The notes beneath the pieces are model-generated. The model did not search any database and was not told the origin of the DNA. It worked only from the letters and a program-made list of their open reading frames with translations. This document shows positions 8,770 through 39,513 of a stretch of DNA of 64,000 nucleotides, in pieces. The stretch spans positions 23,932,001 through 23,996,000 of the forward strand of contig CM106586.1 of NCBI GenBank assembly GCA_048013815.1. The letters are read 5' to 3'. This DNA is from Setoptus koraiensis. Taxonomy: Eukaryota; Animalia; Arthropoda. The position numbers and the translations under genes were made by a program. Each line of letters opens with the position of its first letter. Position 1 is the stretch's first letter.

Positions 8770-8901
8770 ACAACTAGTGCCAGTCATTAATAAATAATGA
8801 TTTAAAAGATCTTTGCAATGCTTGCAATTTTTTCAAATAGGAAGTGAATCATGCTACATTTCATTCATTTATTTATCGCTTTCTGACAACATTGAGATTG
8901 G

Positions 8902-11900
8902 CTACTCAAAGAAATTCAAGCATCTCGACAATAGTATAGTAGAGCAACATTCAAAAGCCAATGTGAACCCGATACGCAGATTTGATTTAATATCTTGAAG
9001 CTCAGTATCTTCCGGCCAAAGATCCAGAAGTAAACTGACGAAAGCTGTTCTTCTATATAATGAGAACTCATAACAAGAACTTCCATTGTCCAAGAGAATC
9101 CGACGATAACCAGAGACACCAAGTTTTTTCAGATCGGCCAGGATCAAGTTAGATGCTGCCCTCAGAACCGCTTTGTTGGTTTCTGAAATAGATATTTGAC
9201 ACACGGATGAGAGTGGCTCGTCACATATCAACTCAGGAACTGGCAAGTCTAAGTCGGCTAGTTTGATGCGTTTAGATCTACCACCAATAAATTCACGCAA
9301 AGCTTGCCTTGCCTCAGCAATGATGGCTACATAGTCTGCGCATGTGTTCAATTTGCATTTGTCGAACAATCTCTCTTGATCATCAATTTCGATTTCCTGT
9401 ATACTATTTGAGTGATCAAATACAATCTTAATCATCAATTTGTAACAATGTTCAAAATCTGTATCGCAATCAGGGCAGAAAATCTTTCCAACTATCACAT
9501 GTATGAACTTTTGAGTCTTGGTGCCTACTAATCCGCTGCAATTATATAGTCCATTCAACTTGGATACACTTTTCATGGCTAACAAACGAATAGAGTATTC
9601 ATCGTCGTTCATCAATTTGAATAATGCACTGAGTAAATTTACTAAAGCTTCCTGATAATTTATTTTCTGTTGTACTGAGAGGAAGTGGTGAAGAGTTGAC
9701 TTCAATATAATCGCAGCGACTTGTCTTGAAAGAATGCAACTTGATCCGTCTGCCACAGTTTCTATAAGTGATGACCAATCGTCGAAAACTTGCGAACTCG
9801 AATTTTGTTCCAATTGTGTTCGCTGGAACATAACTTCTACCAATTTGGACGAGCAAAATAGTGCGACGAACTTTGTGTCACATTCTGGGAGAATTTTAAC
9901 GAAAGTAGTCATGAATCGTAATTTGCATTCTAGACTTCCATCGTCGTCATGTGACCATTTCAATTGGTCGAAGTTTATCTCATCCGCTAACATGGACATA
10001 ATCGCAAGTAGTTCGATTGCCCTCGGAGTGTTACTAATCTTTGCAGAAAATAGTTGTTCGACGCTCCTAGGTTGGAACTCTGGCAAGTCCCTCAATTCAA
10101 ACATTGATTTGTGTATTTTCTCAGATTTGTGCAGGTCGATGTTCATGAATTTCTTATGAATATAGTTCGTATATAAGTTTCTGTCATATTCACTTTGATT
10201 TATGTCTTTTGATTTATCGAATATTGTTTCATGTAGGATGAGGGAATCAATATCTAGTTTATCTAAAATACTTTCCAACTCGTCATTGGGCCGCACCGTC
10301 GCAAAAGAGAATCGAATCCATCTTATTAATGATCTATGAAAGTTGGTACTCAAGGTCCGGTTTGGTTGTTCCGATAGCAAAGCGACGAAAAGGTTCTCAA
10401 TGTCACGGTTAGCCAACTTTCCAGTTTCGAGACCGGACATCAAGAAGATCTGGAGGTATTTAAAAGCAAACTCCTCCAAGGCGGGGTCGTTTTGATTCAA
10501 GTTGAATAATGTGTTCTCCAAAAGGTTCAGCTGGCACGATACGCATTCTTGTCCGTATTCTGAGCTAGATAAGCGTATTATATAAGTCTCGATAAGATTG
10601 AACAACTCACACATTAGACGATAAGAAAAGGGGTGATGCTCATGAAATAAGCTGATCATAGCCTGTATCACTTGTTGCGAAACAAAACTAATGTTCTTAA
10701 TAGCAACGTTAAAGTAGGGTTGGTCACGTAAATCTTGCTGGCTTAACCATTCTTTTAGTATAAGTATGGATCCATGCAAATGGTTTTCTTTGATTGTTTT
10801 GAGTTTGCTAGCATCAATGAAAAGCTCTTTGATATTCTCCAGGGTAGTGATTTTGCTTGGTAAGGAATGGCATGGTAAGGAATTATCCAGAGATGCATAG
10901 TTGATGCAGAAGTACTCCAATCTCACACATAGTTTTGCTGCTATTTTTCTCAAGTTTAAATCAGGACATCTGAAGCAGACTTCCGCCATAGGTCCAACGA
11001 ATGGTAGGATAACTTTTTCGTAAGTATAGTTGACGCTAGGATTGATTGATGGGTGCAGTCTGTTAAGAAGAATAACTATCGTGTGGATTGATGCAAGGTG
11101 ATGGCGACTTTCTAGTCCGTAGGAGAGATACTTTAAGAATTTTTCAATCATCCTGGGATAACGTGAAAAGAAGCATTCAAAAGACAGTTTGTTCTTTCTG
11201 TGAATGTTATTCTTCAATCTACTACAACCAAATGTTCGGCCTACTACTGCACTCAATAGCATATTAGCGCAATTTCTAATCGGGAATGATTCGGAACCAA
11301 AACTCTCTATGGTTACGATGAAAGTTTGCTCAATGTAAGGCGCAACTTTTTCGGCAAGCTGATGCTCGTTGATAAGGGCTTTCAGAATATTTAAGGAATG
11401 TACTTTTTGGTACTCTTCAGTGTTTTGGTCGTTTAGAATACTGAACAGACAATCGACAACCCATCTCAGGTTTTCTGATTCATGCCGATGTTCAGATACC
11501 AGTATAGCTTGAATCATAAACGGGAGGCCTGCAGATCTACGTGTTGTGTAGGCTTTCAAGAACTTAACCTTACCTTCTATCATGTCAGAGTTGTCTCCAG
11601 TGTTATATTCACCTTTGAAATCAAGCATGATAGATCCCAATGAGTCCAATAATAGTTTTCGACAACGTTCATCCGGCCACACTCTCTTGGTCAACGCGAG
11701 AAACCCATTATAGGCTTGTTCAAACGCCCCCCGATGACGCAAATTTCTTAGATAGTGGTTGAAGAAAGATATCATTTTTGTTATACCGTCGAAATCAATC
11801 AGAGGCTCATGAGTGGATTGAAATGCTCGGGTTGCCAGGGTTCCAGGACCAGGGCTAGGATTGGGGTGCATCCACCACAGTCGATTACACATTAGGCCCA

Positions 11901-13503
11901 TTGATAATGAACATTCTTTGATTGTTTTCCATCCTGATATCAATAGCATCTGAGATGTTATCGTTTGATATTTGGCATCAGATATATTGACAGAGATATT
12001 GAAGGCTTTGCTCAAAGAATCTATAGTTACTGGTTTTATATCCATAGGAAGATGACCAATACTTTCAGGGTTTAGGTTGCAAACAAGAACTGAAACAATT
12101 TCGCAAGAATCAACAAGTAGTCCGATTATTTTGTTAATCAATTCTTTCCAATTTTTTAAGTTCGTGTATACTTCAACAACATCTATTTCCTCTAAAAGAG
12201 CTCTAATGCAAGTCAATATAGGATAAATCGGATGATTTGCTGAGCCATAAATGAAATTATCTTTGCTGACTCTTATATTTTCCTCCGTGAGATTGGCTAA
12301 TGTATTAAGATTGTCGAACAAACAGTCGGTCTTGCTCCATTCTGGATTTATATCCGGCCCAAAGTGGATTATCATTTTGAATATATACTTGGCAGTTAGA
12401 GAACTTGCTGGGTTAACGCTGCCACTCAATTCATATGCTATATCTCTCAATGATGTCAAATGCGGCTTAATATCAAACAAATTATTTTTACACAGAATGA
12501 ATATCAATTCTAACGCTAGCTGTTTGTTTTCTTCAAAAGAGTCAGTAAGACATCCTAACACAGTATCAAAACATATCTTACGCTTGTAATTGTCTGCAAT
12601 CGGGAATCTATGATCGTCGAAAGTTATGACTTCTGCAATAATTTTCAGTGTTGATAGAGTGAGCACAAAACTGCCAAAGTATGCATTGTAGTAGATATTA
12701 TCAAAACAGTTATCTATTAACCAAAAAAGAAATACTTTATAATTGTTGTGAATCTCTTCGAGATGCTCTGGTGCTAGAGTCTTGTACCTGGTGGCTGAAC
12801 TTAGACTGTCTTTGATTCTATTAACAAGTTTTGATGTAAGTGCCAGGAGCTTTTGTCTATGCGAGGGCTCTTGAAAACTAAGAGCGTCTATGAATATTAT
12901 CTTGAAAAGAATCAGTTCTGAGGTCAAAATCCTAGTGGTTTGTCTCGATTCTAATGCCAGTGTGATGGCGTCTATTTTTGTAGTATCATCACTTATCTCT
13001 ATCGCTTTCTCGAGAAGTGCTTGTATTGTTTCTGTTGGTATCAAAGTTTTTCTACCTCCTTTAGATTCTTCCGCAATTCTCAAGAACTTTAGAATTGATA
13101 TCTGGATAGCGAGGATATCTCCTTGATCGTGATATTCTTGGAACCATTGATCAGGATTAAATAAAATTGGTTCAAAAATTGATGCAACATACACTGGGCA
13201 AATTGTGGATAATTTGGGAAAGATTTTGGTAATGAGTACACGGCCTGCATATCTCGGAGGGTTTCGTGTAATCTCTATGGCCAGTCGAGAGGCGAGTTCT
13301 GTTTTAATTAACACATTCTCACTTTGAGCTACTTGTGAGATGTTCGTGATGAGCCCAAAATAGCCATCTTGTCTTTCATTTAGTATGCCGATGAGCTTGT
13401 CTAAAAAATTTGTCCGGTCTACTTTGTCCTCAGGGCCTCCATTCAAGACTGAATCTAGTTCTTGTTTGTCAATGGGAGCAACACGATCCTCCTTAGGTGT
13501 CAT
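8902..13503 (-). CDS. THADA: THADA / Trm732 homolog (DUF2428, HEAT-like repeats), 1533 aa, intronless
   Basis: TTRRSAGLPF, LLISGWKTIKECSL, LRHRGAFEQ, VHSLNILKAL, FPIRNCANML and related THADA-family motifs. Confidence 0.92.
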   Translation of the reverse strand: MTPKEDRVAPIDKQELDSVLNGGPEDKVDRTNFLDKLIGILNERQDGYFGLITNISQVAQSENVLIKTELASRLAIEITRNPPRYAGRVLITKIFPKLSTICPVYVASIFEPILFNPDQWFQEYHDQGDILAIQISILKFLRIAEESKGGRKTLIPTETIQALLEKAIEISDDTTKIDAITLALESRQTTRILTSELILFKIIFIDALSFQEPSHRQKLLALTSKLVNRIKDSLSSATRYKTLAPEHLEEIHNNYKVFLFWLIDNCFDNIYYNAYFGSFVLTLSTLKIIAEVITFDDHRFPIADNYKRKICFDTVLGCLTDSFEENKQLALELIFILCKNNLFDIKPHLTSLRDIAYELSGSVNPASSLTAKYIFKMIIHFGPDINPEWSKTDCLFDNLNTLANLTEENIRVSKDNFIYGSANHPIYPILTCIRALLEEIDVVEVYTNLKNWKELINKIIGLLVDSCEIVSVLVCNLNPESIGHLPMDIKPVTIDSLSKAFNISVNISDAKYQTITSQMLLISGWKTIKECSLSMGLMCNRLWWMHPNPSPGPGTLATRAFQSTHEPLIDFDGITKMISFFNHYLRNLRHRGAFEQAYNGFLALTKRVWPDERCRKLLLDSLGSIMLDFKGEYNTGDNSDMIEGKVKFLKAYTTRRSAGLPFMIQAILVSEHRHESENLRWVVDCLFSILNDQNTEEYQKVHSLNILKALINEHQLAEKVAPYIEQTFIVTIESFGSESFPIRNCANMLLSAVVGRTFGCSRLKNNIHRKNKLSFECFFSRYPRMIEKFLKYLSYGLESRHHLASIHTIVILLNRLHPSINPSVNYTYEKVILPFVGPMAEVCFRCPDLNLRKIAAKLCVRLEYFCINYASLDNSLPCHSLPSKITTLENIKELFIDASKLKTIKENHLHGSILILKEWLSQQDLRDQPYFNVAIKNISFVSQQVIQAMISLFHEHHPFSYRLMCELFNLIETYIIRLSSSEYGQECVSCQLNLLENTLFNLNQNDPALEEFAFKYLQIFLMSGLETGKLANRDIENLFVALLSEQPNRTLSTNFHRSLIRWIRFSFATVRPNDELESILDKLDIDSLILHETIFDKSKDINQSEYDRNLYTNYIHKKFMNIDLHKSEKIHKSMFELRDLPEFQPRSVEQLFSAKISNTPRAIELLAIMSMLADEINFDQLKWSHDDDGSLECKLRFMTTFVKILPECDTKFVALFCSSKLVEVMFQRTQLEQNSSSQVFDDWSSLIETVADGSSCILSRQVAAIILKSTLHHFLSVQQKINYQEALVNLLSALFKLMNDDEYSIRLLAMKSVSKLNGLYNCSGLVGTKTQKFIHVIVGKIFCPDCDTDFEHCYKLMIKIVFDHSNSIQEIEIDDQERLFDKCKLNTCADYVAIIAEARQALREFIGGRSKRIKLADLDLPVPELICDEPLSSVCQISISETNKAVLRAASNLILADLKKLGVSGYRRILLDNGSSCYEFSLYRRTAFVSLLLDLWPEDTELQDIKSNLRIGFTLAFECCSTILLSRCLNFFE

Positions 13504-14371
13504 TTTTGAAAATAAATTAAATTCTAGTTAGTATATTAAACCTATCGTGTTGAATATAAAAGAGAGTCGACGATATTCTATTTACATGTCCCAATCGGAA
13601 TGCATCTCCTCGCTGCCGCGTTACACGCTGTTGCCACCGGTAAAATTTCACCAACGCTGAACGTTCTCATCAGCTTGCACACAAAAGCACATGTTTCTGA
13701 ATCGAAAAATAACACGAGTCTCGCTTGTTCAACATAAACATGCCGAGTGCGATATCAAGACATATCTACTCCATTGGTTTTGTAGGCAAGAATGACTATT
13801 TACATTGTAGATCCCTCACTGACTGCGTAAAATTATTGAAGAAAAAAAGAGAGCAAAATAGTAATGATAATAACAACAAGACGAGAACATTGAACAATGA
13901 GTTCCCACTCGAGAATAGCTGATTGGGTCGGGGATATTACGAGGTCCTCATGCACTCGCATTCGACCATTGCTGAATACAAGAATTAGTTGAAAATTTGA
14001 AAAATTATTTAATGATACTAATATCTGCTATTATACATGTTGTAATCATAACTTTATTAAGATTGGTGCTAACAACGTTAATTGTGCTGTGAATGGTCAG
14101 TTAAAGAGTTCTCTTCGGTAACTAGTTCTTTGATATTAGTTGTTCCAAAAATTACTGAATTCCCCTTCGTAAACGTCGCTCATCTGTAATATATCTTTTT
14201 CGATAAACTTGCTGGAGTGTCCACAATTTTCTTGTATCGTCTTGAATACGTTTTAGTCATATACATGGGTCTGACATATTATTAGTTAAAGTAGTAGATA
14301 AAGAAGTTATCACAGAAACCGGACGCTTCTTTGGAGATCTATTCTGAAAAATGTGTTCGCTTGTGTGTCAA

Positions 14372-17300
14372 TCAAGAAAAGTTCTCGTATTGGTGAAGAA
14401 AAAACGGTAGATCTCTCTTGTTGTTGACGGTTTCACAGGCTTGAGTTATTGACTTGGTCATAGGCTTAGGGCCGCAACTGAACACTCCCACTTTATTTAC
14501 CTGTTGGTGTATGAAAATTGATGAGAGAAAAGAGAAAAAAATTTAGCTTCTGTTATTTGATGAACAGTTCCATGGGATACAGAATTATCTATCAACTAGT
14601 ATGGAGAAACGATACTAACATATGAATGCTGCTTCTGTACGTATTGTAAAAAGGAAGGTAAATCCGGTCTGCCAAAATGATTCTTCGCTTTTAAACCTGT
14701 GAACAAACTCTTATTGGATAACCTCTGGAAATGCTTTTCACAGATATACTGAAATTTTTAAATATAAACAACAAGTATTAATATTAACAGAATTAAAATT
14801 CAGAGTGAACTTTTTTTACAACGATTACAGAGGTGTCTACGTTCAGTTATTACTTGTTCAAATATACTTACCAACATAGTTGTTCTCAGATCAAATCTAT
14901 GGAAAAATTGTGTTATAAATATATGCATTTCTAAAACACCAGTGACGTCTTTCCTCTCGACATCTCGGAGGACATCAATAAACCATTCAAAGTTTCTGTG
15001 TGAAGGACATATCCATATGAAGTACACCTAATAATTAATTCAGTTAGTAATTCAATACAATGATTAATAAATAATGTAGTTATTGTGTTTTGTTAGTGTG
15101 GATGCGAAAATAATTTATGAGAAAAGGTTTATCAGTATACATTAACTTCAGGATATATGCTTCTTTTGAAATGAATTTAACACATTCATTCTCATAAACT
15201 TACTTTTTTACATGCAACTCCCGAGAATCTATTGGTAGATGTCCCAAACACCAAATCTTTGAGAATTGATGCGTAAGGAGTCACTCCGATGCCTCCACCA
15301 ATCATGACAGCTACCTCGTATTTGTGCCAATCCTGATTCCCACCACCGAAGGGACCATCTATTCTTATTCTAGGGGGTAATTTAATGTTTTTAAACTGCA
15401 TGTTGACCGGATCGAAACAAGAACGCAACTTCCACGTCCAAGGACCATGCGCTTTGATGTAAACGGATAACTGGTCTTCGTGAGGTGCTGATGTTAAAGT
15501 GAAAGCATGATATTCGCGTTGTCGAAACGCTGTACAAGCCAACCGAATCCATTGGCCAGATCTATACCGAAATCCCTTGGGGCGAACAAACTTGATCCTC
15601 GTGACATCTGCGTATAAAAATATCGATGAGTGTTAATTTAATATAGTCATGATTATAGGAATCCTGATTCTACTTGGTATTTGGCCAAATGAATAGAAAG
15701 AAAAACTTACCTGAAGGTAGTAGTTCGGTTTCAAGTATTTCTAGTTCTTGAAGTTTTGTCTGTAGACTAATCAGTTGATCTATTGCGAACAGTATTGCTG
15801 GTATCATGAAAAATATCCAAAATCTTGGGCTTCCAGTCAGCTTAGATGATCCATGAAGTAGTGTCAAGGCATATATGGCATAATAAAGCTTATGGGTGGA
15901 CCAGAAATAACTGTAAGCAAACCTTCGAACTTTTTGATGTGCAAATACAAAGACAATGGAACATAGTATCCAAAGAAAGAGTCCTGTGGTACCTGTGACT
16001 GTTTCAAAAACCCAAAAGAAGAATGTTGGCCGAGAGTCACTGTTGAAAGCCATCTCTTTGGTCATACATCTGAGATGTTCCACTGGTTGATTCGAAATGT
16101 GCCAGAAGTTTACACAATGTCCTACTGTGTGAACGACGGTCATCACTCCTCCCGTATAGGCCACGAGCTTGTGAAATCTTATATGGCTATCTAGAGGAAT
16201 ATACTCTCTGAAGGGTGTATCTCTCAATTTTGTCATGAGTTTCCTACACATGGTTAAAAGCAGCAAGGCAAAGCATAATGAGAGTGCCGCAGCCGAGCCT
16301 CGAGTTATGGCTATTCCAATGCCCATTACATGACGTAAATCCATATGCTCGGAAAGGTATGAATAATTGACAAATCTTTCAACGAATGATACAGCCACAG
16401 CAACGTAAAATATCAATAAATAGACTATATCTTGTCGATGTTCCTCTATATATGTTACAACTGCATTGATCCTATTGCGAGCCTTAGCCAAAGCTGATAT
16501 CGACGTAACTTTTTTGCCTCCATGAACACTACTGTTTTCAAAATTGTTTAATGGGTTAGTTTTTGTTCGGATTCCTGTATCTATTAACGTCATCTTTCGT
16601 TTGCAGGCGGCATCAGGTAAATGGCTATCACAGGTTTTCATGCTTATTGAGTTGTTTTCTTCTAAAAAGAAACTCTTTTTGGCACCTTTCATGTCTAGCC
16701 CAATTGACAAAAATTCACCATTGTCACTGTAGGTGCCTAGAATTGTTTTAAAGTCATCGTAAGTCAACAATTCCTTGTTATGCAATCCAACAGATTCAAA
16801 CATTCCCTGAATAACTAGATTAATACCATCTTCATTCACAGATTTTGTCTTGGCTATGTCTACTAAAGATCGTAGTACGTCAACAAGTTCGTTCTTCTCA
16901 ATCAAGCCTTTACTCTCGTGATCGCACATATCGAACACTATTCTTAGTTTATCCTCAGGTTTACCCTTTGAAAACATCACAACTGTGTCGAGAAATTCTT
17001 GAAATGATATATTGCCATCACTATCTTTGTCGACACAATTGAACATTTGCTTCACAAACAAAGAATCAGATCTCATGCCTAATGCTTCAGCAAATTCTTG
17101 TTTCGACAGCGATGTTCTCATGATCATGCTTATATCTGGAGGGGATATCCTATAGATATTATCAGTTGATGAGGTCACCAGACCTTCATTAGTATAAGCA
17201 TAAGGAGATAAATCACTGAGGGCACTAGTCGCACTTGGTGTTTTGAGTCCAAATGTTAATGCATATGCTTCTCGAAAGAATTGATCCAATCTTTGTTGAC

Positions 17301-20040
17301 GCTTCTCTTTGGTTTCTGCATTCGCTAGCATAATCTCTTTTCCTATGTAAGATTTATCAATTGACTTGTTGATGCTAGCTAAATAATCATCTAGTTTGTT
17401 TAGAAATCTCTGTCGATTGCCGATATTCTGAAATTGTAACACAAGGTCATATTCACGAGCAACACGAATCAAAATTATTGGTTTGCGACTAGTGTAGTTT
17501 CTAGATGACTGATTTGACATATCACTGGCAAAATCTTGTGAAATTTCAACTGTTAAAGTGTTTACATGTGTCAAGTCCAGCTTACGTTGAGTTTGGCCTT
17601 TTCTATCCAATGTGTAAATAGTTTCATCTGGTCCCAGTCTGACCTTGACATAACGCTTTAGGTTGGAGTGTAACCACTCTTTGGCATAAAATTTTTCACA
17701 GTTAGGTAATTTCTCACAGATTGTGTCGCTAGTAGTGGTCGACGATTGATCTTGTTGTTCATTATCTACAAAACGTGAATTGGAGCGTTGTTTTTGGTGT
17801 TGATTATGTTGAGCAATGCATTCGAGTCTTGCTTTATATTGCCGACGCTTACTGTTTTGTAACTTTATCACACAATAAGCAGCTAAACAACACACAATTG
17901 GTATAAATATTAATGTTAAGCATACCATGATAAAAGTAACTTCACTTCCTTTAAAATAGCTCCAACCTTTGACTGTAAAACAAGACTTTAGTTGTTTACT
18001 TGACAATTGTCTAGGTTGAGGGCACGGATCACCTGGTCTAAATCGGAACACGTCTCGTTGAATACTATCTTCTGGTATCAAAGTTGAATTAGATATAATA
18101 TCGTACAGTGTTATTCCACGTATTTCGTCGATCTCTGCCTTGGTAAAGATACCAGATTCAGTATTCTCGAACCAAAATCTGTCAGCATCTCTGAGTCGTT
18201 CGAATTGTTCACGTATGATTCTTCTAAATAATGGACCTGGTCGGCCACGCTCAGATTCTGATTCCAACATGCCTCCTATGTATAAATCGATATTGTCTAA
18301 TCTATTCTGATATAGATTGCTTAGGTCGTTAAATAAACCAGGCATACTTTTACCAAGCACAGGATTTATATCTGTCCAATTTGTTATTGGTGGCAAGTGA
18401 AAAGCCCTCCTAACAGTGTTGTAATCAGCTATTCCATTATCACGACCACGCATTATATTGAGTGAGGCCAGATCGCGACGGCTAAAATCCAAGGGTCCAA
18501 AAAGCTTATCTCTTACATCGTTACATAGAACATAATCTTCCCTTTCGGCAATCTGAGAGGCGGCACCCATGAGCAATGGTTCAATACCTATACTACTCAC
18601 AACTTCTTCGGCATTCCACCAAGTACTGCACAATCTAATTCCTTCATAACCATCTGAGGTATTCAGATATTGGCACTTTTCGTCTCGTAAATACAAGCCA
18701 GGCGGTATCATCGTATGGCCAAATCTAAAAGCGGCCGATTGAAATACATGTGATATTCCTGGATGCAAATCGGGTTTATAGCCTGTGTAAGGTGAAACTT
18801 GATCCTGTGGCGAGTCGGCATCCAGCAATGTTGGCAGATATTCATATAGAATTATGTTCTGTAGGCTGGCAATGACTAGTCTTCTTGCTCGCTGAAAAAT
18901 TTCTTCATCTGTCCAGTCTTTATGATCGGCATGAATTCTCTCAGCTAAAACATTGTGCCAACGGTAAAACAATATACCAAAAGCCAATATGATGGGGTTT
19001 TGATTAGTTCTTGGATCACCAAGAAGAAACATTCTCTCTGGAGTTTTCATTCGGAGATGATGTGCCGGTGCCGCATTGATGAGAGGTGCTCTGTGTTTGT
19101 TTCTTATTGGATAGCCAAACAATTGAGGTGCGGGTGAGTTTAAATTATCGAATGTGGTATCCAACAGTTTAGAAACTGTTGAATCAAGATCGTCTACATT
19201 GTGCACCATTTTCAAGGTTCCATGGCCATCAAACGATCGCATGGTATTGAGCCATGTTTCAGATGTGCTATAAATAAAAGAGCCATCGATCCAGCTCGTC
19301 ACTTTGTTTATTTGCTCCCTTGGCAAATTTGGAGACTGGCCTGTCGAAGAATCGTAGGAGGCTCGATAGAAAGGCATTGTACGTTGTCCTGTACAATCTC
19401 GGTCATACATAGGATCACATTTTTCAATACGAATTCTGTGCATTTCGATAGGACAACCAGATTCGCTGGCCATTAGTATTTCCGATGCAACGACTTGGCC
19501 GAAAAAAGTGAACAATGTGGTCAGGTTCCTCTGAGACGGTTTTCCATCCTCGCCTCGCATTAATTTTTGGCTCAAAAGTCTAGCACTAGGCCTGTCATCA
19601 TTATCCATTAGGTAAACTCCATCGAGATATGCCGGTGGCACTTTACGTCTGAGTCTGGAATTTGGCGACCCCCAATCGCTATTCGCCAGATTGTTGTACC
19701 AGCCATCGTACCGTTGAAACTCGAACCTTAGATGTTGTTGGATTGGTGCGAGCGGTTTCGTTGAAGGCTTTCTAGTAACAATTGGTGCCGGTGCAATAAT
19801 AGGCTTAGGTGTTGATGATGCAAATTGAAGTTCGGGAGATGTTGAATTTGTTGCAAAAGCTCCCTTGCTAATTAGAGTCAGAAATAATGCAGTTGATATC
19901 ACAAACACTGAATGAACTAGGTTTCTTTTAGTTATATTTATATTTGAATTGTGCGTATTGGGTTGAACAGTTCGTCGAGACAAAAAATCTATTTTCGTTA
20001 TCGATATGGATGAAGACACTGATGACACAAAAGAATACAT
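14372..20040 (-). CDS. Duox: Dual oxidase, inverted duplicate; exons 20040-15711, 15607-15204, 15027-14872, 14748-14620, 14500-14372
   Basis: Reverse complement of the plus-strand copy with an open frame. Peroxidase-like domain (EFQRYDGWYNNLA, TSWIDGSFIY), EF-hands (DKDSDGNISFQEF), TM helices, FAD (HAFTLTSAP) and NADPH (GGGIGVTPYAS, GVFSCGP, ENF) motifs. ATG at 20040. Confidence 0.9.
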
Positions 20041-20129
20041 CGCGGTAGTACAGTAAGTATCCTGTAGAGTTAAGGTGAGCACTAGAAATAGTGGCAACGT
20101 AAGATTTAAAGTTGATTAGCAGCAATGTA

Positions 20130-20289
20130 CAGTAACCAACCAACGAATTTCGAACCTAGAATGGTGATGTGTATCAAGACTGGACAAAAAAAACAATGTT
20201 CAAAAAACCGCCTATGCCAGGCACTACAAAGGATGCGCGGACCAAAATTTTTGCATTTCAGCGTTGTGGCAATACAACGATATTGTCTG
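20130..20289. mobile_element. 160-bp insertion flanked by TA, with CAG...CTG ends (possible Tc1/mariner-type non-autonomous element)
   Basis: TA|CAGTAACC...TTGTCTG|TA; the empty site at 28396-28397 has a single TA. The terminal inverted repeat is only 3 bp. Confidence 0.4.
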
Positions 20290-20837
20290 TAGTAGAGCCA
20301 GTCGTAGCGCCACTTGTAGAGAATGGAAATGTCGGAAGTAGAATTAGTCGCTACAATTATATTATTAGTCTTGTGTGTGTGCGTTTCGAATATACATATG
20401 TGCAGCTATCTGCTTTCACGTAGGAAAATAGCGGCAGCCGGTGTGATATGAACGTGGTAAAGTAACGGAAAGAAACAGTTACAGCTACAGCAGCCGTTAC
20501 TTTAAGCTATTGCAGAGATGACGGTGAAGTCACATGTACTTGCAGGGATTGCGGTGGTGTCTTGGGGAAAAAAATGCCAATGTGTTCATTGGCGCTTGAA
20601 AAAGAATCGAGAATAAGAGAATGACGAGTCTCGGTGGGGGGTGCCCGTCACTAGCACGCGCGTCAGACGAGTTAACGTAAGGCTTTTCGACATAAGAGAG
20701 AGTTTCATCGAAATATCTTAACTGCAACAAACTCATTACTGATCATCATCATAACAAGCTTTAACAAGCCCTCATTATTGGTGCCTATTTTATTGTAAAA
20801 CAATGTTAGAGAAGTAGTTCTCCATGTTCTTTATTGC

Positions 20838-20960
20838 TTATGCCGGGCCAAGATTAGATGTGCAACTTTTATCTAATGTAATTAGGAACTGATAGCTCGG
20901 AAACATTAGATCAGAAGGTTTGCTCAGCGGATTCAACTTTTTTATTTGGAGTCTAATTAT
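20838..20960 (+). repeat. 123-bp direct copy of 25334-25456 (115-bp core with TTAT on both sides)
   Basis: TTATG(C/A)CGGGCCAAGATTAGATG...GGAGTCTAATTAT, two substitutions; inserted in a (TTA)n run that is empty at about 27050-27060. Confidence 0.92.
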
Positions 20961-21197
20961 TATTACTCACATTTCCACTAAGCCTCTATAGAGGTAGAAT
21001 TCTAAAGGTAGAATTTCTATATATATAATGTGTATAGGAAGTCAGGCTTAGTTTTGTTCAATCAGTCAGTCAGTCACCCAGCCAGCCAGCCAGTCAACTC
21101 GGCAGACATAAAAGAATCTGCAGTGGAAATACGTTCACCTTGAAGTTAAGATTTTCTATTCTCGAACAAGCTTTGGCTGTAGTATGAGTAAGTTGGC

Positions 21198-22185
21198 TCT
21201 GAAAGCCCTTATCAACGAGCATCAGCTTGCCGAAAAAGTTGCGCCGTACATTGAGCAAACTTTCATCGTAACCATAGAGAGTTTTGGTTCAGAATCATCT
21301 GCTTGAGATGTCCTGATTTAAATTTGAGAAAAATAGCAGCAAAACTATGTGTGAGATTGGAGTACTTCTGCATCAACTATGCATCTCTGGATAATTCCTT
21401 ACCATGCCATTCCTTACCAAGCAAAATCACTACCCTGGAGAATATCAAAGAGCTTTTCATTGATGCTAGCAAACTCAAAACAATCAAAGAAAACCATTTG
21501 CATGGATCCATACTTATACTAAAAGAATGGTTAAGCCAGCAAGATTTACGTGACCAACCCTACTTTAACGTTGCTATTAAGAACATTAGTTTTGTTTCGC
21601 AACAAGTGATACAGGCTATGATCAGCTTATTTCATGAGCATCACCCCTTTTCTTATCGTCTAATGTGTGAGTTGTTCAATCTTATCGAGACTTATATAAT
21701 ACGCTTATCTAGCTCAGAATACGGACAAGAATGCGTATCGTGCCAGCTGAACCTTTTGGAGGACACATTATTCAACTTGAATCAAAACGACCCCGCCTTG
21801 GAGGAGTTTGCTTTTAAATACCTCCAGATCTTCTTGATGTCCGGTCTTGAAACTGGAAAGTTGGCTAACCGTGACATTGAGAACCTTTTCGTCGCTTTGC
21901 TATCGGAACAACCAAACCGGACCTTGAGTACCAACTTTCATAGATCATTAATAAGATGGATTCGATTCTCTTTTGCGACAGTGCGGCCCAATGACGAGTT
22001 GGAAAGTATTTTAGATAAACTAGATATTGATTCCCTCATCCTACATGAAACAATATTCGATAGATCAAAAGACATCAATCAAAGTGAATATGACAGAAAA
22101 TTATATACGAACTATATTCATAAGAAATTCATGAACATCGACCTGCACAAATCTGAGAAAATACACAAATCAATGTTTGAATTGA
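21198..22185 (+). pseudogene. THADA: Duplicated internal THADA fragment (inverted copy of 10092-11386) with a 307-bp deletion
   Basis: LKALINEHQL...GSES|CLRCPDLNLRK...SMFEL; lacks start and C-terminus; substitutions N>D, K>R, N>K; deletion junction at about 21299. Confidence 0.93.
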
Positions 22186-24322
22186 TTGGGAGGGCGATGG
22201 CTTTGTAACTATTATTGGAAACCTAGCACACGTTTCAAATGAAGATGGGCGAATCTTGGAAGAGCCTGTTGTTTTGGATGAAGCCGAATTAGAGGCAATC
22301 AAAGATCTCAAGGAACTGCTCATAGGCAAAACGGAAATAATGGTCGACGAACTGGTCAAGTCATAGCCCATCATATTTTACTATTTAAAACTTTTATTGA
22401 TATGAACAACGTTTCATAAAATCTAACAAGAAGTTGACTCCTCTAGTCTAATTTTTTTGTGAGCATGTGGCTGCGATGGGGGTGGCCGGATAGTTATCAT
22501 GTTGTTCTTCAGGTCCGGAGGGATTGTTGAATTGTGTGTAAGTTTGAAGGTGTCAAAGTCGATCTCTTGTCGCAATATACCACTCATGACAAATTCTGTT
22601 TGCTCGATACCTGTTATAGTGGGAAGGTTGAGAGATAGTATTAGTAACATTGAATTGACAAAGTAAAGAGTTAAGATATCATGATGATGAGCTTGTATAC
22701 TTACTTGCTCCATATGAAACGAGATTCTCACATAAATGGTAATCATTCTCGCAAGAAATTACAACCAGTTGTTTGTCTGCTAGTTTCAGTTGTTCGAATT
22801 GCATTCTACTAGGTGGCTTCTTGAAGACGACTTGACCACCTGCGGATTCAATCATTGGTTTTAAAATAGATGGCGCTGGTTTGACTCCAGGGGTAACAAA
22901 AAATACTAAATCTTTGAATAGAAGACACTTCCTAGGATTATCCTCGAGATCCAAAATAGGTCGCACACTTGACGAGGGGTTTTGTTCTGATAATGAGGCA
23001 TGTTGCGCTTCTCTTCTGGCACGTCGCCGTAGAGATTGTTTCATATTGAAGCAGAATTTATCCTCGTTCTCTTTGTCATGGAGAAGAAAATCCTTCTCGT
23101 CAAGTAACATATTAGCACGATAGGATTCAGTTAGCCAGTTCGTTTTGAGAATGTACCTCGCGTAATTATAAGCACAAATGAACGTTGTGGTTCGACATAC
23201 TCGATCTGTTATCAGGTGCGTGCATTTCACTGGATCCTCGACTACTTTGGCACCCAATTTAGAGGCTAGGTTCTTCAATTCTTCTAGTCTACTTGCCCCG
23301 ATATGTGTAAATGTGATGAATATATTATTTTGGTATCTGGAAGAAGACGATTTGGGTGTTAGAGTCAATTGCCTCTGGTTAGTTGCGGTGCCAGTATGAT
23401 TCGTGATCGACGAGGCCGGTGCCATATTAGAGGCGGAACTGTTGGAATTATTGCATCTATCTGCCGGTGGGTTGGTAGATGATTCAGAACTTTGCTTGAC
23501 ACAGTCTTCATTTTTTACATCACCTTCCTGTTTCATGAGATTTTGTTCATTCCGTTTATCTGGAACTTCTATAACTCCATCTTCACTGTCCAGCTTGATC
23601 ATACCGTTGGTCTTATTGGGAGGGATCTCTTCCGATGTATTACTTCTCATGGTGCAACTTGTCTCCAACTTGATACAAGGCAATTTGCTCACACTCTCAA
23701 TTTCTTCTTTCATGACTTTTATAGGATTCAACCAGGGAGACATGACATCTTGAACACTGATGTATGATGATATCTTGAGAGGTTTTTCAACCTTAAAAAG
23801 CTGATAGCGCGGTAAGACCAAAGAAGAAGGGTCTATGGATCCTAGAAGAACATCGGTCAGCCATTGGGCATTGACAATGGAGATTTTCCAATGCACGGCC
23901 TTCTTATATTTTTGACCTCCAACCGAGCGACAAATTAGAATAGTATTCTTGGGACTTAGATAATCCGTGTATCGAGCTCCACTCCTTAAAATCATCTCGC
24001 GTAGATCGACACGTTCTTTGCCTTCAAAGTTGGTAAGAGATATTATATGGTTTTTACAAGGAGCATTATCTTTCGTGTACGGCAGTGGTATATGTATAGC
24101 CTTCCATGGTGAATCCAGTTTACGCTGGGCAATAACGTCATTGACCCAATAAATAGTGACACATCGCTTACCCTCGCGAAATGCTTGTTGGTAAATGTCT
24201 GTGGATCGAGTCTCGCAAATGAGGTGAGTGCAATCTGACAATAGCTCAGTTATCTTTCCTCCATTTTGTTTGATTATGGCAAACCAGTGATTTAAACAAT
24301 CTCTAGAGGTATTTTCATGTTC
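22186..24322 (-). pseudogene. PAXIP1: Direct copy of 37140-39276: 3' part of PAXIP1 (BRCT3-6, last intron and exon) plus the 3' 180 bp of the RAD54B-N gene
   Basis: Constant offset of 14954; the translated ORFs are identical to those at 37.1-39.3 kb; 5'-truncated. Confidence 0.93.
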
Positions 24323-25228
24323 TCTCACTAGTTGGATGATTCTTCATTCCCTCTTCAAGTCTTAAGGCGGATTTAATGGTCTTATATTCTCGAACTGTCT
24401 CATGTGTCCACTTTTTGACAAGATTCAAATAGTAGATTCTGACAATCTCTTCATCTATTTGACCATTAGAGGAATCGATTCTAGCTTTTGTTTGTTCTAA
24501 CATTTGCTCTAGTTCCTTCTCAGTATTATATTGGTCAATCTTGTCTTTCCTAGATTGTGCCATATCCAGTTGGGACAAATTATTTATAGCCTCGTCAAGC
24601 GCTTGATCGACTCTCAAATCTGCCAAACCATAGTGCTTGATTTTCTCCAGGAAATCTTCCGCGTTGGCTTTAGCTTTTGAGAATACTTCTAATCTCATAG
24701 ACGTTTGCATCTGGCCAAGATCAAACCTCATGTAAACATTTGACAATAGAGCTGGTACGAGAAGATATCGAATATTATTGGTTGCCACTTCATCGATTGT
24801 CTCGTTATTACTAAATAAATCTAGGCTGCTAACGAATTTATTTGCTCGTTCTAGGAGGTGTCTTGCTGTCTGAAGAAGATCCTGCCTCTCGGATGCTAGC
24901 TTACATTCAGCTTTGAGAAGGCATCTCTCAGCTTGTTCATAAAGTTCTGGTAGCGTAAAATCCATGTTATTCGAGATATTTGCCAAATCCATAGGCCCAG
25001 CGGTCTGTGCAATCATTTTTGGATCACAAGGCCAGTCCATGTAAATTTCCGAAACGTCCAACTCCATCAGATCTGCTTCACAATCTCCAAGTAAGCTAGA
25101 TAAATTTGGCTGGGTCCTACCGAAGTCCCCACGGACAAATTCTTTTATATATGTACCAGCTTCAGTCTCGAGTGTCAGGGCGATAGTCTTATCTTGATAA
25201 TGAGGTGGTGAAGGAAATCCTCAACTCC
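24319..25228 (-). pseudogene. PUS10-IGBP1: Diverged fragment of the Pus10-IGBP1 ORF (inverted copy of 7458-8408), truncated at both ends
   Basis: Junction still has no stop codon; in-frame indels of 27, 15 and 12 bp; FVHGD>FVRGD, Y>N, V>I, D>N, S>T; ends ...TSERT* at the PAXIP1 junction. Confidence 0.92.
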
Positions 25229-25333
25229 TCAAATGTTCTATTCAATTAAGAACAAAAATTTGTCATTAACTAAGCGACATGATGTTTGCCAATGGTAGTC
25301 ATAACAATACGCTAGTCCATGTTGTTAATATTT

Positions 25334-25456
25334 TTATGACGGGCCAAGATTAGATGTGCAACTTTTATCTAATGTAATTAGGAACTGATAGCTCGGAAAC
25401 ATTAGATCAGAAGGTTTGCTTAGCGGATTCAACTTTTTTATTTGGAGTCTAATTAT
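25334..25456 (+). repeat. Second copy (probable donor) of the 123-bp element at 20838-20960
   Basis: Direct sequence match. Confidence 0.92.
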
Positions 25457-28400
25457 TTGCTGCTTGATTAAACATACAGCCATACACAGATACAGATTCC
25501 CAGTTACCTATTTGGATGATAAGAAAAATTGACGTCAGCTAATTTATATTGTTATTATATTGAATCTTATATCAGATTTTCTTGGCTAATATTCAAATGA
25601 TAAACGTCATGATTACATGTCAGGATTGGTGCTCCGAGACAAACAAACGAAAATTCTTCTCTTTTCCATGTAGAATATCCATATCTTAATAAGATAATCA
25701 TATTCCTTCGTTGATTAAATATTTAGATAACATTCAATCAGCGTGATGCTTAATTATACGAGGTGGTGACGGATAAGAACTCATTGATTGGATCAACTTT
25801 GTTTCTAAATTCAGCCTCTCCGTCGCTTGCTCTCTCTCACTCTCTGTCTCTGTTTCTCTTTCTCACGCACACTTTCGTAGACACATTTACAATGATGGAT
25901 GGGCTTTACAAAACAGCCTTAGTCGCCATTTGCTGATTGTTGGCCGGAAGAGGTGCACACAGGAATCGACCTGCCCAGCTCCGGTTTTTCTTTCGGTCTA
26001 ATTATAAAAGCATAAACAAAAGTTGAACTTCTCATCAAAGATCTGTCTTCCCCCTTGCTGACAATCTTTCTCTACTGTATCTGTCTATCTAATTCACCCG
26101 CTCGCTCGCTCACTCAATCATTCATTTGCCAAAGCATGTGTCTATTAATAAAAACCCGCATTAGTTGTTGTCTCTCTATCACTATTCGTCACTTTGGGTT
26201 TGTACAATTTGAATTCTAACATCTCATCACTCAAGTGGTTTGCGCTGAATAATTGGAGAGAAGAAGAATAGTAATAATAATAGGAAGAAGAGGACAACGA
26301 AGAAGACGAGAGAAAAATAACGATTCATAACAAGACTTGTTGCCTGTTATTGTTGATATTGGTTCATTCTTTATAATTCATCAAACAGTCTATTGTGTTA
26401 GTGTGTGTGTCTGTGCGAACGAACTAATCTGGGAAAAACTGACTTAGTTTAATACTCTTGTGAGCCAACTTACTCATTCTACAGCCAAAGCTTGTTCGAG
26501 AATAGAAAATCTTAACTTCAAGGTGAACAACCATGCCAGTTAGTTAACGTATTTCCACTGCAGATTCTTTCATGTTCTTACATATGAACAACCTGTTAGC
26601 TACCTGCCTGCTTACTTGTCTGCCGAGTTGACTGCCTGGTTGGCTGACTGACTGACTGATTGAACAAAACTAAGCCTGACTTCCTATACACATTATATAT
26701 ATAGAAATGTCTACTCGATTCCCTGTCCTGTGTTGAGTGATAAAGACCGTGAATTTTAATAAATACTATGAATAGATACCTCCGGAGGTATTAATTAGCC
26801 CATTTGATAAGGTGTCACGGGTAGCAAATTGCACTACATTGAAATGTAGCTGTAGAATCGTCATCGTCATCAGTATGTTGTTGTTGTTGTTGTTGCTTTG
26901 GGTTGTCGTCATTAGTGTTCAATAAAGCCAGTAAATACTGTATAAGCCAATGAGTACTGTATAAGTAAGTGCAGTATTAGAATTAGAAAAGTAACGCAAG
27001 CAGCATTTGTGTGCAGTGGAAGTATAGTGGCTTAGTGGAAATGTGAGTAATAATAATAACAATAAAGACGAATTGGAGAACTACTTCTCTACTACTTCTC
27101 TAACATTATTTTACAATAAAATAGGCACCAATAATAAGGGCTTGTTAAAGCTTGTTATGATGATGATCAGTAATGAGTTTGTTGCAGTTGAGATATTTCG
27201 ATGAAACTCTCTCTCTTATTATTCTATTATTCTATTATTTTCTTATTCATGCTCTCTGCACCTGTCGAAAAGCCTTACGTTGACTCGTCTGACGCGCGTG
27301 CTATTGTCGTCCCCCTTCCGATCGACATTGTGCACGTTTCCTCTATTCATGCAGGAATTGAGTTGAACATTTGTTGCTGCATTCGCCGCCACCAACCGCT
27401 ATTATTTTCCCCCTCCCCTTCATAGATGATCAAATGGAAAAAAGTTGGCGGGCACCCCCACCGAGACTCGTCATTCTCTTATTCTCGATTCTTTTTCAAG
27501 CGCCAATGAACACATTGGCATTTTTTTCCCCAAGACACCACCGCAATCCCTGCAAGTACATGTGACTTCACCGTCATCTCTGCAATAGCTTAAAGTAACG
27601 GCTGCTGTAGCTGTAACTGTTTCTTTCCGTTACTTTACCACGTTCATATCACACCGGCTGCCGCTATTTTCCAGTTTCATCTTTGTATCCCTTATGTGTT
27701 CCCTGCCTTCCCCCCCCCCCATTGTCACTTGCCAGTATCTGATCAACGTTGTTGTTGTCACTGTACAAGTCACTGTCGTCATTATCATATGATATCTTGC
27801 CACTAAGGTAACTTGCGGTAAGCTTGCAAAATTAGCCAAAGCTTGGTAAATTATAATAATAAATAAATAAAAAAAAAGTAGATAGACAGATTAGTTAGAA
27901 TTGACAGTATCAGTGGAGTTATTATTGGCGGGCTGTTTTAGTGTACTGGTTCTTTCTGTCTCTGTCTAGATCTTACTTTCTAGGGAGAGGTGGTATCCTC
28001 AAGAAGAATATACCAATATATACCTAACTACACATCTTACACAGTACGTGAACCGTTCTACAGCTGTTTTGGCATGTGTACGTCGACAGCGAAGTCTTGC
28101 CTTCACAATTGTTGCATATATTTTTATTAATAGTGTTAATCTACTAACACCATGAATAGTAACAAAAACGCGTAAGCAAACACTAGAACACCCTCGGAGG
28201 AGAGATTTACATGAATGGCATGAGGGGATTATTAATATCTACTACGTGAAAGCAGATAGCTGCACATATGTATATTCAAAACGCACACACACACACACAC
28301 ACAAGACTAATAATATAATTGTAGCGACTAATTCTACTTCCGACATTTCCATTCTCTACAACTGGCGCTACGACTGGCGCTACGAGTGGCGCTACTACAT

Positions 28401-28484
28401 TGCTGCTAATCAACTTTAAATCTTACGTTGCCACTACTTCTATTGCTCACCTTAACTCTACAGAATACTTACTGTACTACCGCG

Positions 28485-31400
28485 ATGTATTTTAAGTAAA
28501 TGTATTTGTGCGTGCATGCGCGCATATATTAATGGTCACTGCCGCTAATAATAATAATAACAACAACAACAACAACACACCACTTGTAGAGTCTTGTCGG
28601 CTTACAAGTGGTTGTAATTTGCAACAACTGCCACATTAACAGCGGAAGCTACCATTAGGCACTCATATAGCAACAAGACATTGCTTACATAGAACAACGG
28701 CAGAGTTTAGCCGAGAAAACACACAAACAGGCAGACACACCAAATCACAAGCTCACAACGAATCACGCAGGCACGCATGCACGCATAGCATTAGCACATA
28801 TGATAGCAAAGGGGTAGTGAGAGAGAGAGAGAGAGAGTTCAATGGCAACGATGGTTATAGACCCAACGTTGGCTAAATAGTTCAAAATATAGAATCTGTG
28901 CATTGTGTCAGTTAGTAGATTATATAGGAGGAGAGACAACAGCTAAGAGATTCGAATTTCGTCTTCACACGTTCTATTTTTGCAACGTAAATACATTAGA
29001 TAGATATCGTCACATGTGATTTTAGTTGCAGTGCCCATTCGCTAATTATAATTATCGGCAACCATTGTTGCCTGTTGTCATTCTCGATATGAACTCACTG
29101 GAGTAACAAGTAAACCAAATAATATTAATAATAATATTATTAACAATCAATTTTGTTGCAAAAACAATACCAACACACAACGACACAAGACGACAATCAA
29201 AAATCATATTTCTAGATGACACACAAATACATTTATTAACATTAAAACTGGCAAAGAAGAAGAGCAACTACCACTACACCATTGATAATACTGACAATAA
29301 TACGCGCGCGCGCGCTCTCATTTCGACATAATCAACAAACCATCGGATACATTATTAATCTAGTTGGAAAAATCATTAATCACGTAGCTCGATCACGTTC
29401 AACACCAACAACAACCATAGACAAACAGTAGAATACAGTAGTTACATTGGCACTAACACGCGTTGTATGCTGTGTATGATACACAAATTATTATTACTAT
29501 TACCATTAAGTGGCCAATCAAGATAAAAGAAGACGAGAGAAGAAACTTATTTCAGGTTTTCTCAGTGGCTCGTCGTCAAATCAGCCAGTGCAAAGCCAGT
29601 GATATCACATTATCCTAGACTTACTTCTATTAGGCTGACACCTTGCCAGCAACAACATTGCACTTGTTGAGTTGACTTATACAAACATTGACAAATAGAC
29701 TAATACACTGATAGATTGGATAGATTGAATTTTGAAACACGCTAAATATTCTTGAGTTCCGTAGCGTCAATTTGCGCTTTGTCGCGACTAATCCACATCT
29801 AGTGGCGACACAGATATAGAGCGAAAAGTTAATACTAACGAAAATAGAACTTTAATAGATCATCTATTGCCATAACCGTGACTATTATCCAGTTAATATT
29901 AACCACCAAACACATACACTCACCTTCCACCATTCACCACTCACCACTTCTTCCCTCACCCGCCTGCTCGCCTGCCCGCCCAATACCCCTCTTCCCCTCT
30001 TCAATCTGAATATTATTATCCCATTTTTATGAAGATCAATCTCAAGGAGATACTAACGTCTAATGCTAACGAACATGCTAATTTCCATCTTAGATAATTA
30101 TGATTTCAGTTTATGAATGATTAAACACGCGACATTTACAAACTAGTAGTTTTAATTTTAGCAGTTATTTTCGAACACGCTCGAATTTTTATAGTCACAT
30201 TGTTTAGTATTACAGTAGCATAACACAACAACAAGCAAGCATAAATGAATAAACTATAGTAGTGATAATGGAAAAAGATGATGAACGATTATCCGACATA
30301 GTAGTATTCATAGCCAATAAGAAACTAGAACATCTCAATAGACACATACATAATTCAGCAAATAACTTCTGCAGTAACACCAATTTAGCAAATCATTCTT
30401 CTGTGTCATCAGTGTCTTCATCCATATCGATAACGAAAATAGATTTTTTGTCTCGACGAACTGTTCAACCCAATACGCACAATTCAAATATAAATATAAC
30501 TAAAAGAAACCTAGTTCATTCAGTGTTTGTGATATCAACTGCATTATTTCTGACTCTAATTAGCAAGGGAGCTTTTGCAACAAATTCAACATCTCCCGAA
30601 CTTCAATTTGCATCATCAACACCTAAGCCTATTATTGCACCGGCACCAATTGTTACTAGAAAGCCTTCAACGAAACCGCTCGCACCAATCCAACAACATC
30701 TAAGGTTCGAGTTTCAACGGTACGATGGCTGGTACAACAATCTGGCGAATAGCGATTGGGGGTCGCCAAATTCCAGACTCAGACGTAAAGTGCCACCGGC
30801 ATATCTCGATGGAGTTTACCTAATGGATAATGATGACAGGCCTAGTGCTAGACTTTTGAGCCAAAAATTAATGCGAGGCGAGGATGGAAAACCGTCTCAG
30901 AGGAACCTGACCACATTGTTCACTTTTTTCGGCCAAGTCGTTGCATCGGAAATACTAATGGCCAGCGAATCTGGTTGTCCTATCGAAATGCACAGAATTC
31001 GTATTGAAAAATGTGATCCTATGTATGACCGAGATTGTACAGGACAACGTACAATGCCTTTCTATCGAGCCTCCTACGATTCTTCGACAGGCCAGTCTCC
31101 AAATTTGCCAAGGGAGCAAATAAACAAAGTGACGAGCTGGATCGATGGCTCTTTTATTTATAGCACATCTGAAACATGGCTCAATACCATGCGATCGTTT
31201 GATGGCCATGGAACCTTGAAAATGGTGCACAATGTAGACGATCTTGATTCAACAGTTTCTAAACTGTTGGATACCACATTCGATAATTTAAACTCACCCG
31301 CACCTCAATTGTTTGGCTATCCAATAAGAAACAAACACAGAGCACCTCTCATCAATGCGGCACCGGCACATCATCTCCGAATGAAAACTCCAGAGAGAAT

Positions 31401-36763: not shown

Positions 36764-36873
36764 TACAACCATCTCCGTTGACACCTCGGTTTGAAACGTC
36801 GACGAAAATAGAAAAAAGGTGACAATACAAATTTTCATTGCTATTATACATTTTCATCGTTACATCGGAAACT

Positions 36874-37320: not shown

Positions 37321-37376
37321 CCCATCATATTTTACTATTTAAAACTTTTATTGATATGAACAACGTTTCATAAAAT

Positions 37377-39482: not shown

Positions 39483-39513
<31 letters not shown>

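Follow-up and report, generated by a model that had tools for sequence, protein, structure and literature searches.

A Mosaic Block in the Duox Neighborhood of the Eriophyoid Mite Setoptus koraiensis: A Probable Complex Segmental Duplication Built in Stages

Complex rearrangements ascribed to fork stalling and template switching or microhomology-mediated break-induced replication (FoSTeS/MMBIR), among them duplication–inverted triplication–duplication (DUP-TRP/INV-DUP) structures and chromoanasynthesis, have reportedly been described in human genomic disorders between 2007 and 2011. Inverted duplicates may also be kept alike by arm-to-arm gene conversion, as in the palindromes of the human Y chromosome and the inverted Hsp70 or amylase pairs of flies. 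In polymerase-theta end joining, priming takes 1–4 nt and the inserts usually measure 2–30 bp (PMC6635534). Here, we describe an 11-kb block (14257–25206) in a 64,000-nucleotide stretch of the genome of the eriophyoid mite Setoptus koraiensis (CM106586.1, positions 23,932,001–23,996,000; hereafter the window, in which all positions are counted unless a chromosome is named). The block lies in the spacer between the THADA and Duox genes, inside the neighborhood from which its own parts come. Judged from the sequence, it is probably a real, lineage-specific complex segmental duplication of the mite chromosome that was built in at least two stages, a reading to which we assign a probability of about 0.6.

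The block belongs to a known class, i.e., complex microhomology-associated segmental duplications with arm-to-arm homogenization. As in human FoSTeS/MMBIR, several templated segments from within tens of kilobases are joined in mixed orientations with overlaps of 0–4 bp, and an inverted copy is inserted beside its own source. Unlike the human cases, the mite block is small (11 kb from a 32-kb neighborhood) and the copy lies between its sources; it is also decayed, its pieces are of two age classes, and it is a germline feature of an assembly from pooled mites and not a de novo allele of a patient. The deletions with short overlaps, the fillers that repeat nearby sequence, and the patches drawn from nearby DNA resemble polymerase-theta end joining, and a POLQ-type gene is indeed present in the mite genome. 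However, the patches, at 141 bp and 2137 bp, are far longer than polymerase-theta inserts, which suggests a more processive, break-induced synthesis for both. As in the Y palindromes and the fly gene pairs, the Duox arms are more alike (99.86%) than their co-duplicated flanks (~98.6%), and the residual differences lie at the margins; unlike in those systems, the arms measure 5.8 kb with a spacer of 10.4 kb, and conversion is deduced from one assembly. What is unusual in the block is how clearly it is layered (first an old permuted insert, next the mosaic, and last a recent patch) and how much non-coding DNA was lost at so low a substitution divergence.

Architecture and Junctions of the Block

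A BLAST comparison of the window with itself resolved 14257–25206 into a mosaic of the local neighborhood, with E-values from 0 to 1e-44 (Table 1). The templated segments are of mixed orientation: the Duox, THADA, and Pus10–TAP42 pieces are inverted, and the PAXIP1 3′ piece and a 141-bp piece are direct. Read on the minus strand, the order TAP42, THADA, Duox is collinear with the source neighborhood. All templates fall within 7467–39276, and six main and ten minor junctions join these nearby segments in cis. The source stretches 8409–10091, 10980–11285, and 11387–26461 have no counterpart in the block. Every block piece was found exactly twice in a search of the whole genome (two sequences of 24.22 and 24.53 Mb, 48.76 Mb altogether). 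The window contains no N bases, so every junction falls within one contig.

Table 1. Block pieces, their sources, and the flanking fragments, by position in the window.
Feature	Position	Strand	Description
Duox′ body	14257–20036	−	inverted copy of 30395–36174, 5780 bp, 99.86%, 8 substitutions, no indels
Duox′ upstream region	20037–21199	−	ten short pieces of source 26462–28491, 91–99% identical
Orphan segment, 162 bp	20130–20291		nothing else in the genome matches
Templated insert, 141 bp	20821–20961	+	copied from 25316–25457, 95%
THADA′ fragment	21198–22185	+	source 11386–11286 joined to 10979–10092, 10 substitutions
PAXIP1 3′ piece	22186–24322	−	direct copy of 37140–39276, 2137 bp, 100% identical
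Pus10–TAP42′ fragment	24319–25206	−	source 8408–7467, 12 substitutions, three in-frame deletions
Pus10–TAP42′ source	7467–8408	+	within Pus10_C+TAP42 fusion ORF 6862–8769 (Pfam)
THADA′ source	10092–11386	−	within THADA ORF 8902–13503 (Pfam)
Duox source locus	26462–36174	+	upstream region, main exon, downstream exons; ORF 30262–34761 (Pfam)
PAXIP1 source	37140–39276	−	3′ part of ORF 37633–42102 (many BRCT domains, Pfam) and downstream DNA
Left flank, old TTC5-like fragment	13891–14256	−	72–78% identical to C1:22.975 Mb and C2:12.387 Mb
Right flank, old PHM-like (Cu2-monooxygenase) 3′ end and downstream DNA	25207–26228	+	76–83% identical to C1:22.976 Mb
ORF, open reading frame; C1 and C2, chromosome sequences.

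The initial annotation had rightly read the block as a condensed version of the locus, mostly inverted and with a templated insert, and all of the segments it listed were recovered by the self-comparison. Its left end was exact. The right end, placed at 25228, was moved to 25206, as the last letters (25207–25228) belong to an older PHM-like gene fragment and not to TAP42. It had also treated the Duox source (26462–36174) as a single piece, but 26462–30394 is in fact reduced to ten pieces, accompanied by the insert, the orphan segment, and fillers. The two THADA pieces stand as described, and the stretch missing between 11286 and 10979 measures 306 bp instead of 307 bp. Pfam bears out the gene labels Pus10_C+TAP42, THADA, Duox, and PAXIP1-type BRCT protein; the further label RAD54B-N finds no support, since four ORFs of 83–160 aa in 36497–37700 have no Pfam match. 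The PAXIP1 piece comprises the last 548 codons of its ORF and 493 bp of downstream DNA. A diverged short tandem repeat, with units ~79–82% alike, occurs in the same source ORF at 39428–39622, just outside the duplicated piece.

The pieces are joined with little or no homology. At the letters, the overlaps are TC at 21198–21199, T near 21298, none at 22185/22186, and GTTC at 24319–24322, just as previously annotated. The six main junctions have overlaps of 0, 2, 1, 0, 4, and 1 bp, and across the block the microhomology amounts to 0–6 bp. By strict extension, at least 3 bp are shared at 3 of the 16 junctions (chance 5% each, p = 0.045), and several junctions contain fillers of 2–30 bp. This enrichment of microhomology is modest, and we do not claim a repair pathway as demonstrated.

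A mosaic of fragments from several host genes, with flanks that both match DNA elsewhere in the genome, could also be produced by Pack-MULE-like or Helitron-like transposon capture. Yet local host sequence explains all of 14257–25206 save the 162-bp orphan segment and short fillers, and the block ends are Duox 3′ untranslated region (UTR) and TAP42 coding sequence. Neither terminal repeats nor transposon ends were seen by eye at these ends or in the flanking sequences, no repeat scan having been run. The flanks are low-copy TTC5-like and PHM-like gene fragments (2–4 loci), not element ends, and the base before the left end of the block is a G, which does not fit the A–T target of Helitrons. 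Capture by a transposon is thus extremely improbable.

Divergence Classes and Staging

The pieces of the block split into two sharply different divergence classes. Compared with their sources, TAP42′ has 12 substitutions in 897 positions (1.34%), THADA′ has 10 in 989 (1.01%), and the Duox 5′ pieces have 16 in 857 (1.87%). These three are mutually homogeneous and form an old class of 38/2743 (1.39%). The Duox body, with 8/5780 (0.14%), and the PAXIP1 piece, with 0/2137 (0%), both differ from this class (Fisher p = 2e-12 and 3e-10, respectively), and no significant difference exists between the two (p = 0.12). Hence, the segments do not share the single age expected from one MMBIR/FoSTeS event. 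The uneven divergence had already been noticed, and the counts given for PAXIP1, Duox, and THADA hold. The statement that IGBP1 (i.e., the TAP42 piece) had diverged most does not, since its substitution rate is not different from that of THADA′ and its lower BLAST identity comes from indels. Likewise, the initial annotation was most likely right in proposing a real complex duplication, but one burst of serial template switching does not agree with the two classes (p ~1e-10 to 1e-12).

Gene conversion can mimic a young age, and for Duox this is what the differences suggest. They lie 76 bp from one end of the arms and 6 bp from the other, in addition to a cluster of four sites, which is the pattern expected when conversion tracts stop short of the ends of homology. 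The 4.4-kb exon contains one synonymous difference, whereas ~25 are expected at the old synonymous rate; selection alone therefore cannot explain the identity. Accordingly, the arms are more alike than the co-duplicated Duox 5′ pieces (8/5780 vs. 16/857) to a degree beyond selection, their divergence being ten times lower than that of the old class, and we infer that the Duox bodies have been homogenized by gene conversion.

Conversion accounts less easily for PAXIP1. This piece has no difference even at its margins, and on its right side the old-class differences set in again 9 bp after the junction. With the old rate, margins of 200 bp that are clean at both ends would arise with a chance of 0.4%; hence, the PAXIP1 piece looks like a later patch. 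A one-step, chromoanasynthesis-like run of template switches that already included PAXIP1, with divergence made uneven later by conversion of the two longest pieces, would fit templates that all lie within 32 kb, the mixed orientations, and the overlaps of 0–4 bp. The PAXIP1 piece also stands exactly where 8409–10091 is missing, as a template switch would leave it; the two longest pieces are the most similar to their sources, which would follow if longer homology makes conversion more efficient; and PAXIP1 and the Duox body are statistically alike in divergence. What speaks against a single step is the absence of differences in PAXIP1 right up to both margins, the places at which conversion tracts tend to end (P = 0.004 for margins of 200 bp), whereas the Duox body does retain differences near both ends. 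Therefore, we consider a one-step origin unlikely.

The old class appears to have diverged in vivo. Outgroup proteins were taken from Logan assemblies (P0001 for TAP42 and P0002 for Duox). The proteins of the closest relatives are 92% and 75% identical, and a search with the 250-aa Tap42′ ORF gave a single relative, at 75%. Against the TAP42 outgroup, all three Tap42′ deletions (27, 13+2, and 12 bp) prove to be derived in the copy, as do two amino-acid changes (Y392N and V474I); Tap42′ has thus decayed in vivo. Taken together, Tap42′ and THADA′ differ from their sources at 11 nonsynonymous and 11 synonymous sites, which gives a pN/pS of 0.25 (p = 0.0018 in a binomial test against pure neutrality), indicating that part of the divergence accrued in constrained genes and not in one round of error-prone synthesis. 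This part was built up over time or through standing variation. The 250-codon frame of Tap42′ is still open and ends at the junction, and the 301-codon frame of THADA′ is likewise open and extends 23 nt into the PAXIP1 piece. All three Tap42′ deletions (24319–25067, minus strand) are in frame, for which the chance is ~1 in 27 if they were random, and one of them corresponds to a single unit of a tandem repeat with a 27-bp period in the coding sequence (source 7681–7742).

The published chromosome-level assembly of S. koraiensis contains two chromosomes and has an N50 of 24.53 Mb (PMC11920263). It was made from unamplified high-molecular-weight DNA of >100,000 pooled wild mites, using PacBio continuous long reads (CLR) at 496×, Flye 2.6, NextPolish, purge_dups, and 3D-DNA, with a reported heterozygosity of 1.13% (PMC11920263). 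The earlier caveat of a chimera from whole-genome amplification is moot if the assembly of the window is the published one. Moreover, a chimeric copy should equal its source apart from sequencing error, but this block carries 38 substitutions and many indels, with derived states.

An assembly artefact could take other forms: the block, some junctions, or the identity of the long pieces may have been made by Flye on noisy pooled CLR reads followed by polishing and Hi-C curation. The sample was indeed pooled and polymorphic, the pipeline included manual edits, and repeats of at least 5 kb may merge and be copied during graph resolution. However, without N bases there is no scaffolding join in the window, and copy-specific substitutions, in-frame deletions, and derived amino-acid changes are impossible from mis-joined reads of one locus. 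As CLR cannot separate haplotypes at 1%, separate assembly of the copy implies that its junctions were present in many reads at 496×; random chimeric reads would not prevail in such a consensus. A missed-adapter fold-back would give a perfect palindrome with no spacer, unlike the block, which as an allele would be without working TAP42 and THADA and has novel junctions at both ends. Hence, we regard an artefact as improbable.

Similarly, an uncollapsed alternative haplotype set beside its own allele would account for the collinear Tap42–THADA–Duox order on the minus strand and for a divergence of the old pieces (1.0–1.9%) near the population heterozygosity. The block, though, is without the three source stretches named above, and hence without most of THADA and the end of TAP42, and it carries an inverted PAXIP1 piece. 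In addition, its ends join TTC5-like and PHM-like fragments instead of 7466 and 36175, and purge_dups had been applied to the assembly. Such a haplotig is very improbable.

In the staged origin that we favor, stage 1 would have begun with a break in the THADA–Duox spacer, between the old TTC5-like and PHM-like fragments, which was repaired by backward copying of the neighborhood. The nascent strand would leave the spacer, switch to the other strand and prime anew at the 3′ end of Duox, and copy back, jumping through the Duox upstream region, THADA, and Pus10–TAP42 before returning to the spacer. Either MMBIR/FoSTeS-type replicative repair or polymerase-theta-type end joining could produce such a structure, with joints of 0–4 bp overlap. 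The Duox upstream region would then have shrunk through many small deletions and gained the 141-bp templated patch, and the Duox inverted repeats, 10.4 kb apart, would have kept exchanging sequence by gene conversion. In stage 2, a later break between THADA′ and TAP42′ would have removed the equivalent of 8409–10091; a 3′ end may have primed on GTTC at 39273–39276, followed by copying of 2137 nt from PAXIP1, ~15 kb away, and blunt closure. The outcome is a duplicate Duox whose frame is open, with a remnant upstream region and a new N-terminus, together with three dead gene fragments.

Several points weigh against this scheme. Two of the main junctions are blunt and the enrichment of microhomology is modest, which is compatible with ordinary end joining. 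Clean PAXIP1 margins of 50 bp have a chance of ~25% by our own estimate at the pooled rate, and complete gene conversion of this piece, although unlikely, would speak against a later patch. Repeat handling in CLR/Flye and short-read polishing may have raised the apparent identity of the 5.8-kb arms to some extent. As the divergence between copy and source is near the reported heterozygosity, the template haplotype may already have carried some of these differences as standing variation, in which case the event could be younger than it appears. Finally, the large gaps may have been present in the copy when it formed and need not be later deletions.

The Second Duox Gene and Its Upstream Region

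Duox is the H2O2-producing oxidase of arthropod epithelia. The second gene, Duox′, keeps the main 4.4-kb exon from codon 43 onward, together with every downstream exon and intron and with 115 bp of the 3′ UTR. Both genes were analyzed through their single-exon ORFs. The copy ORF (15670–20097, minus strand) matches Duox in Pfam, and four coding segments with introns lie downstream of the main exon. In the source, the main exon runs to the ORF stop at 34761 and the stop codon of the gene is at 36057–36059. The eight differences between the bodies comprise three amino-acid changes (S47F, L998V, and M1175I), one synonymous change, and four sites outside the coding model; compared with the Duox outgroup, the source and not the copy is derived at L998V. 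A processed (retro) copy was rejected, as the block keeps four Duox introns and intergenic DNA.

The upstream region is far less complete. Source 26462–30394 (3.9 kb) is kept as 1.16 kb, in ten pieces of 30–228 bp separated by nine gaps of 12–1903 bp, so that about three quarters of its length (~78%) is gone at a substitution divergence of <2%. The small gaps show overlaps of 1–6 bp or short fillers, as in microhomology-mediated joining; the fillers measure 2–30 bp, and one of them repeats its own flank. The orphan segment stands in place of 12 bp of the source. The 141-bp insert is oriented opposite to the rest of the copy. On one side, its BLAST segments overlap by 6 bp (ATTATT); on the other, alignment by eye gives GGA and strict extension gives a 2-bp filler. 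Transposon insertions into the source were rejected as the cause of the size differences, because the 1.9-kb segment and the rest of 26462–28491 are unique in the genome; the differences are therefore deletions in the copy or were present from its birth.

The largest gap, the 1903-bp deletion of source 28492–30394, bears on the start of the protein. In the related species that served as the Duox outgroup, IMEKDDERLSDIV is conserved in the same frame immediately before the Duox body, which makes ATG 30268 the probable native Duox start. On this comparison, Duox′ has probably lost the conserved start, the N-terminal motif, and the first 42 codons through the 1.9-kb deletion. Its frame now opens at the in-frame ATG 20040, whose source equivalent, ATG 28485, heads a frame of four codons. 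The source 1.9-kb stretch may be upstream or 5′-UTR sequence. Alternatively, the source Duox could be spliced from a donor that follows 28495 to an acceptor that precedes 30375, a join that is also in frame. Precise intron loss at 20036 was rejected, as the deletion is imprecise and IMEKDDERLSDIV is conserved inside the supposed intron. Thus, the view that only Duox stayed intact holds in that Duox′ is the sole gene with a long open frame and a preserved body, but not for the N-terminus, from which the start and 42 codons are probably lost.

Older Flanks, Repair Genes, and Wider Context

Both flanks of the block are older gene fragments that are cut off exactly at its ends, which indicates that the block was laid into an older insert and probably replaced part of it. 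On the left, the TTC5-like relatives L003 and L004 keep matching each other past the point where the window turns into Duox 3′ UTR. On the right, the sequence that begins at 25207 is ~82% identical to L003 8369–8089, which lies on the other chromosome and is the 3′ end of a gene for a copper type II monooxygenase (PHM-like); this flank supplied the template for the 141-bp insert. With identities of 72–83%, the flank layer is much older than the block.

The two flanks correspond to the halves of one contiguous 1.7-kb stretch, L003 6670–8369 (C1:22974668–22976368), in swapped order. In the C1 stretch, the TTC5-like 3′ part and the PHM-like 3′ end are arranged tail to tail with their inner ends 40 bp apart; in the window, their outer ends face each other across the block. 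This swapped layer suggests an earlier insert derived from a tandem duplication or a circle. TTC5-like sequence occurs at three or four genomic loci with 72–83% identity (L003 6300–7227, C2:12386444–12387367, and C2:12391940–12392129), and fragments of this gene thus seem to have been copied repeatedly.

Regarding repair genes, two adjacent ORFs (C1:19991017–19993728 and C1:19994082–19996319) code for a POLQ-type helicase and for a polymerase of family A. No match in the genome was found for Ku (PF02735, PF03731, and TIGR00578) or XRCC4 (PF06632), in a search in which Mre11 was found as a control and which had no eukaryotic Ku control; the eukaryote-only DNA-binding domain of Mre11 was detected by the same method. 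At most two ATP-dependent ligase domains are present in the genome. For parasites, the loss of classical end joining has been put forward as a cause of deletions, templated insertions, and shrinking genomes (PMC6635534). It is tempting, but rather doubtful, to see in this gall mite a lineage without classical end joining, whose breaks would be routed to microhomology-mediated and break-induced copying. Deletion bias, genome streamlining, and local inverted duplications that create or re-head genes would follow, and the block would be the largest multi-stage record of this process.

The block offers a well-resolved natural case of break repair that duplicates a whole gene while scattering dead fragments of its neighbors. 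Its non-functional parts are “dead-on-arrival” DNA, in which the spectrum of spontaneous deletions and templated insertions is recorded for an animal genome that ranks among the smallest. Combined with the apparent absence of Ku, this record provides a testable link among repair-pathway loss, DNA loss, and recurrent inverted duplication. The locus may also be prone to further change. Exchange between the Duox inverted repeats would flip the spacer and swap the two Duox upstream regions, and exchange between the identical PAXIP1 direct repeats (2.1 kb, 12.8 kb apart) could delete ~15 kb together with the source Duox. Users of the assembly will meet in the window a second Duox with an altered start and three fragments that are pseudogenes and ought not to be annotated as genes; at the 5.8-kb inverted and 2.1-kb direct repeat pairs, they should expect mis-mapping as well as polymorphism for inversions or deletions.

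Two further repeat features are found in the distal part of the window. Dinucleotide-type simple repeats at 55256–55301 and 56264–56331, ~1 kb apart, match each other in inverted orientation. A polypurine (GA-rich) tract of 2.26 kb occupies the plus strand at 60636–62900; it has a GC skew of ~0.77 and is loosely periodic, with sub-units of 26–42 bp and a higher order of ~365 bp.

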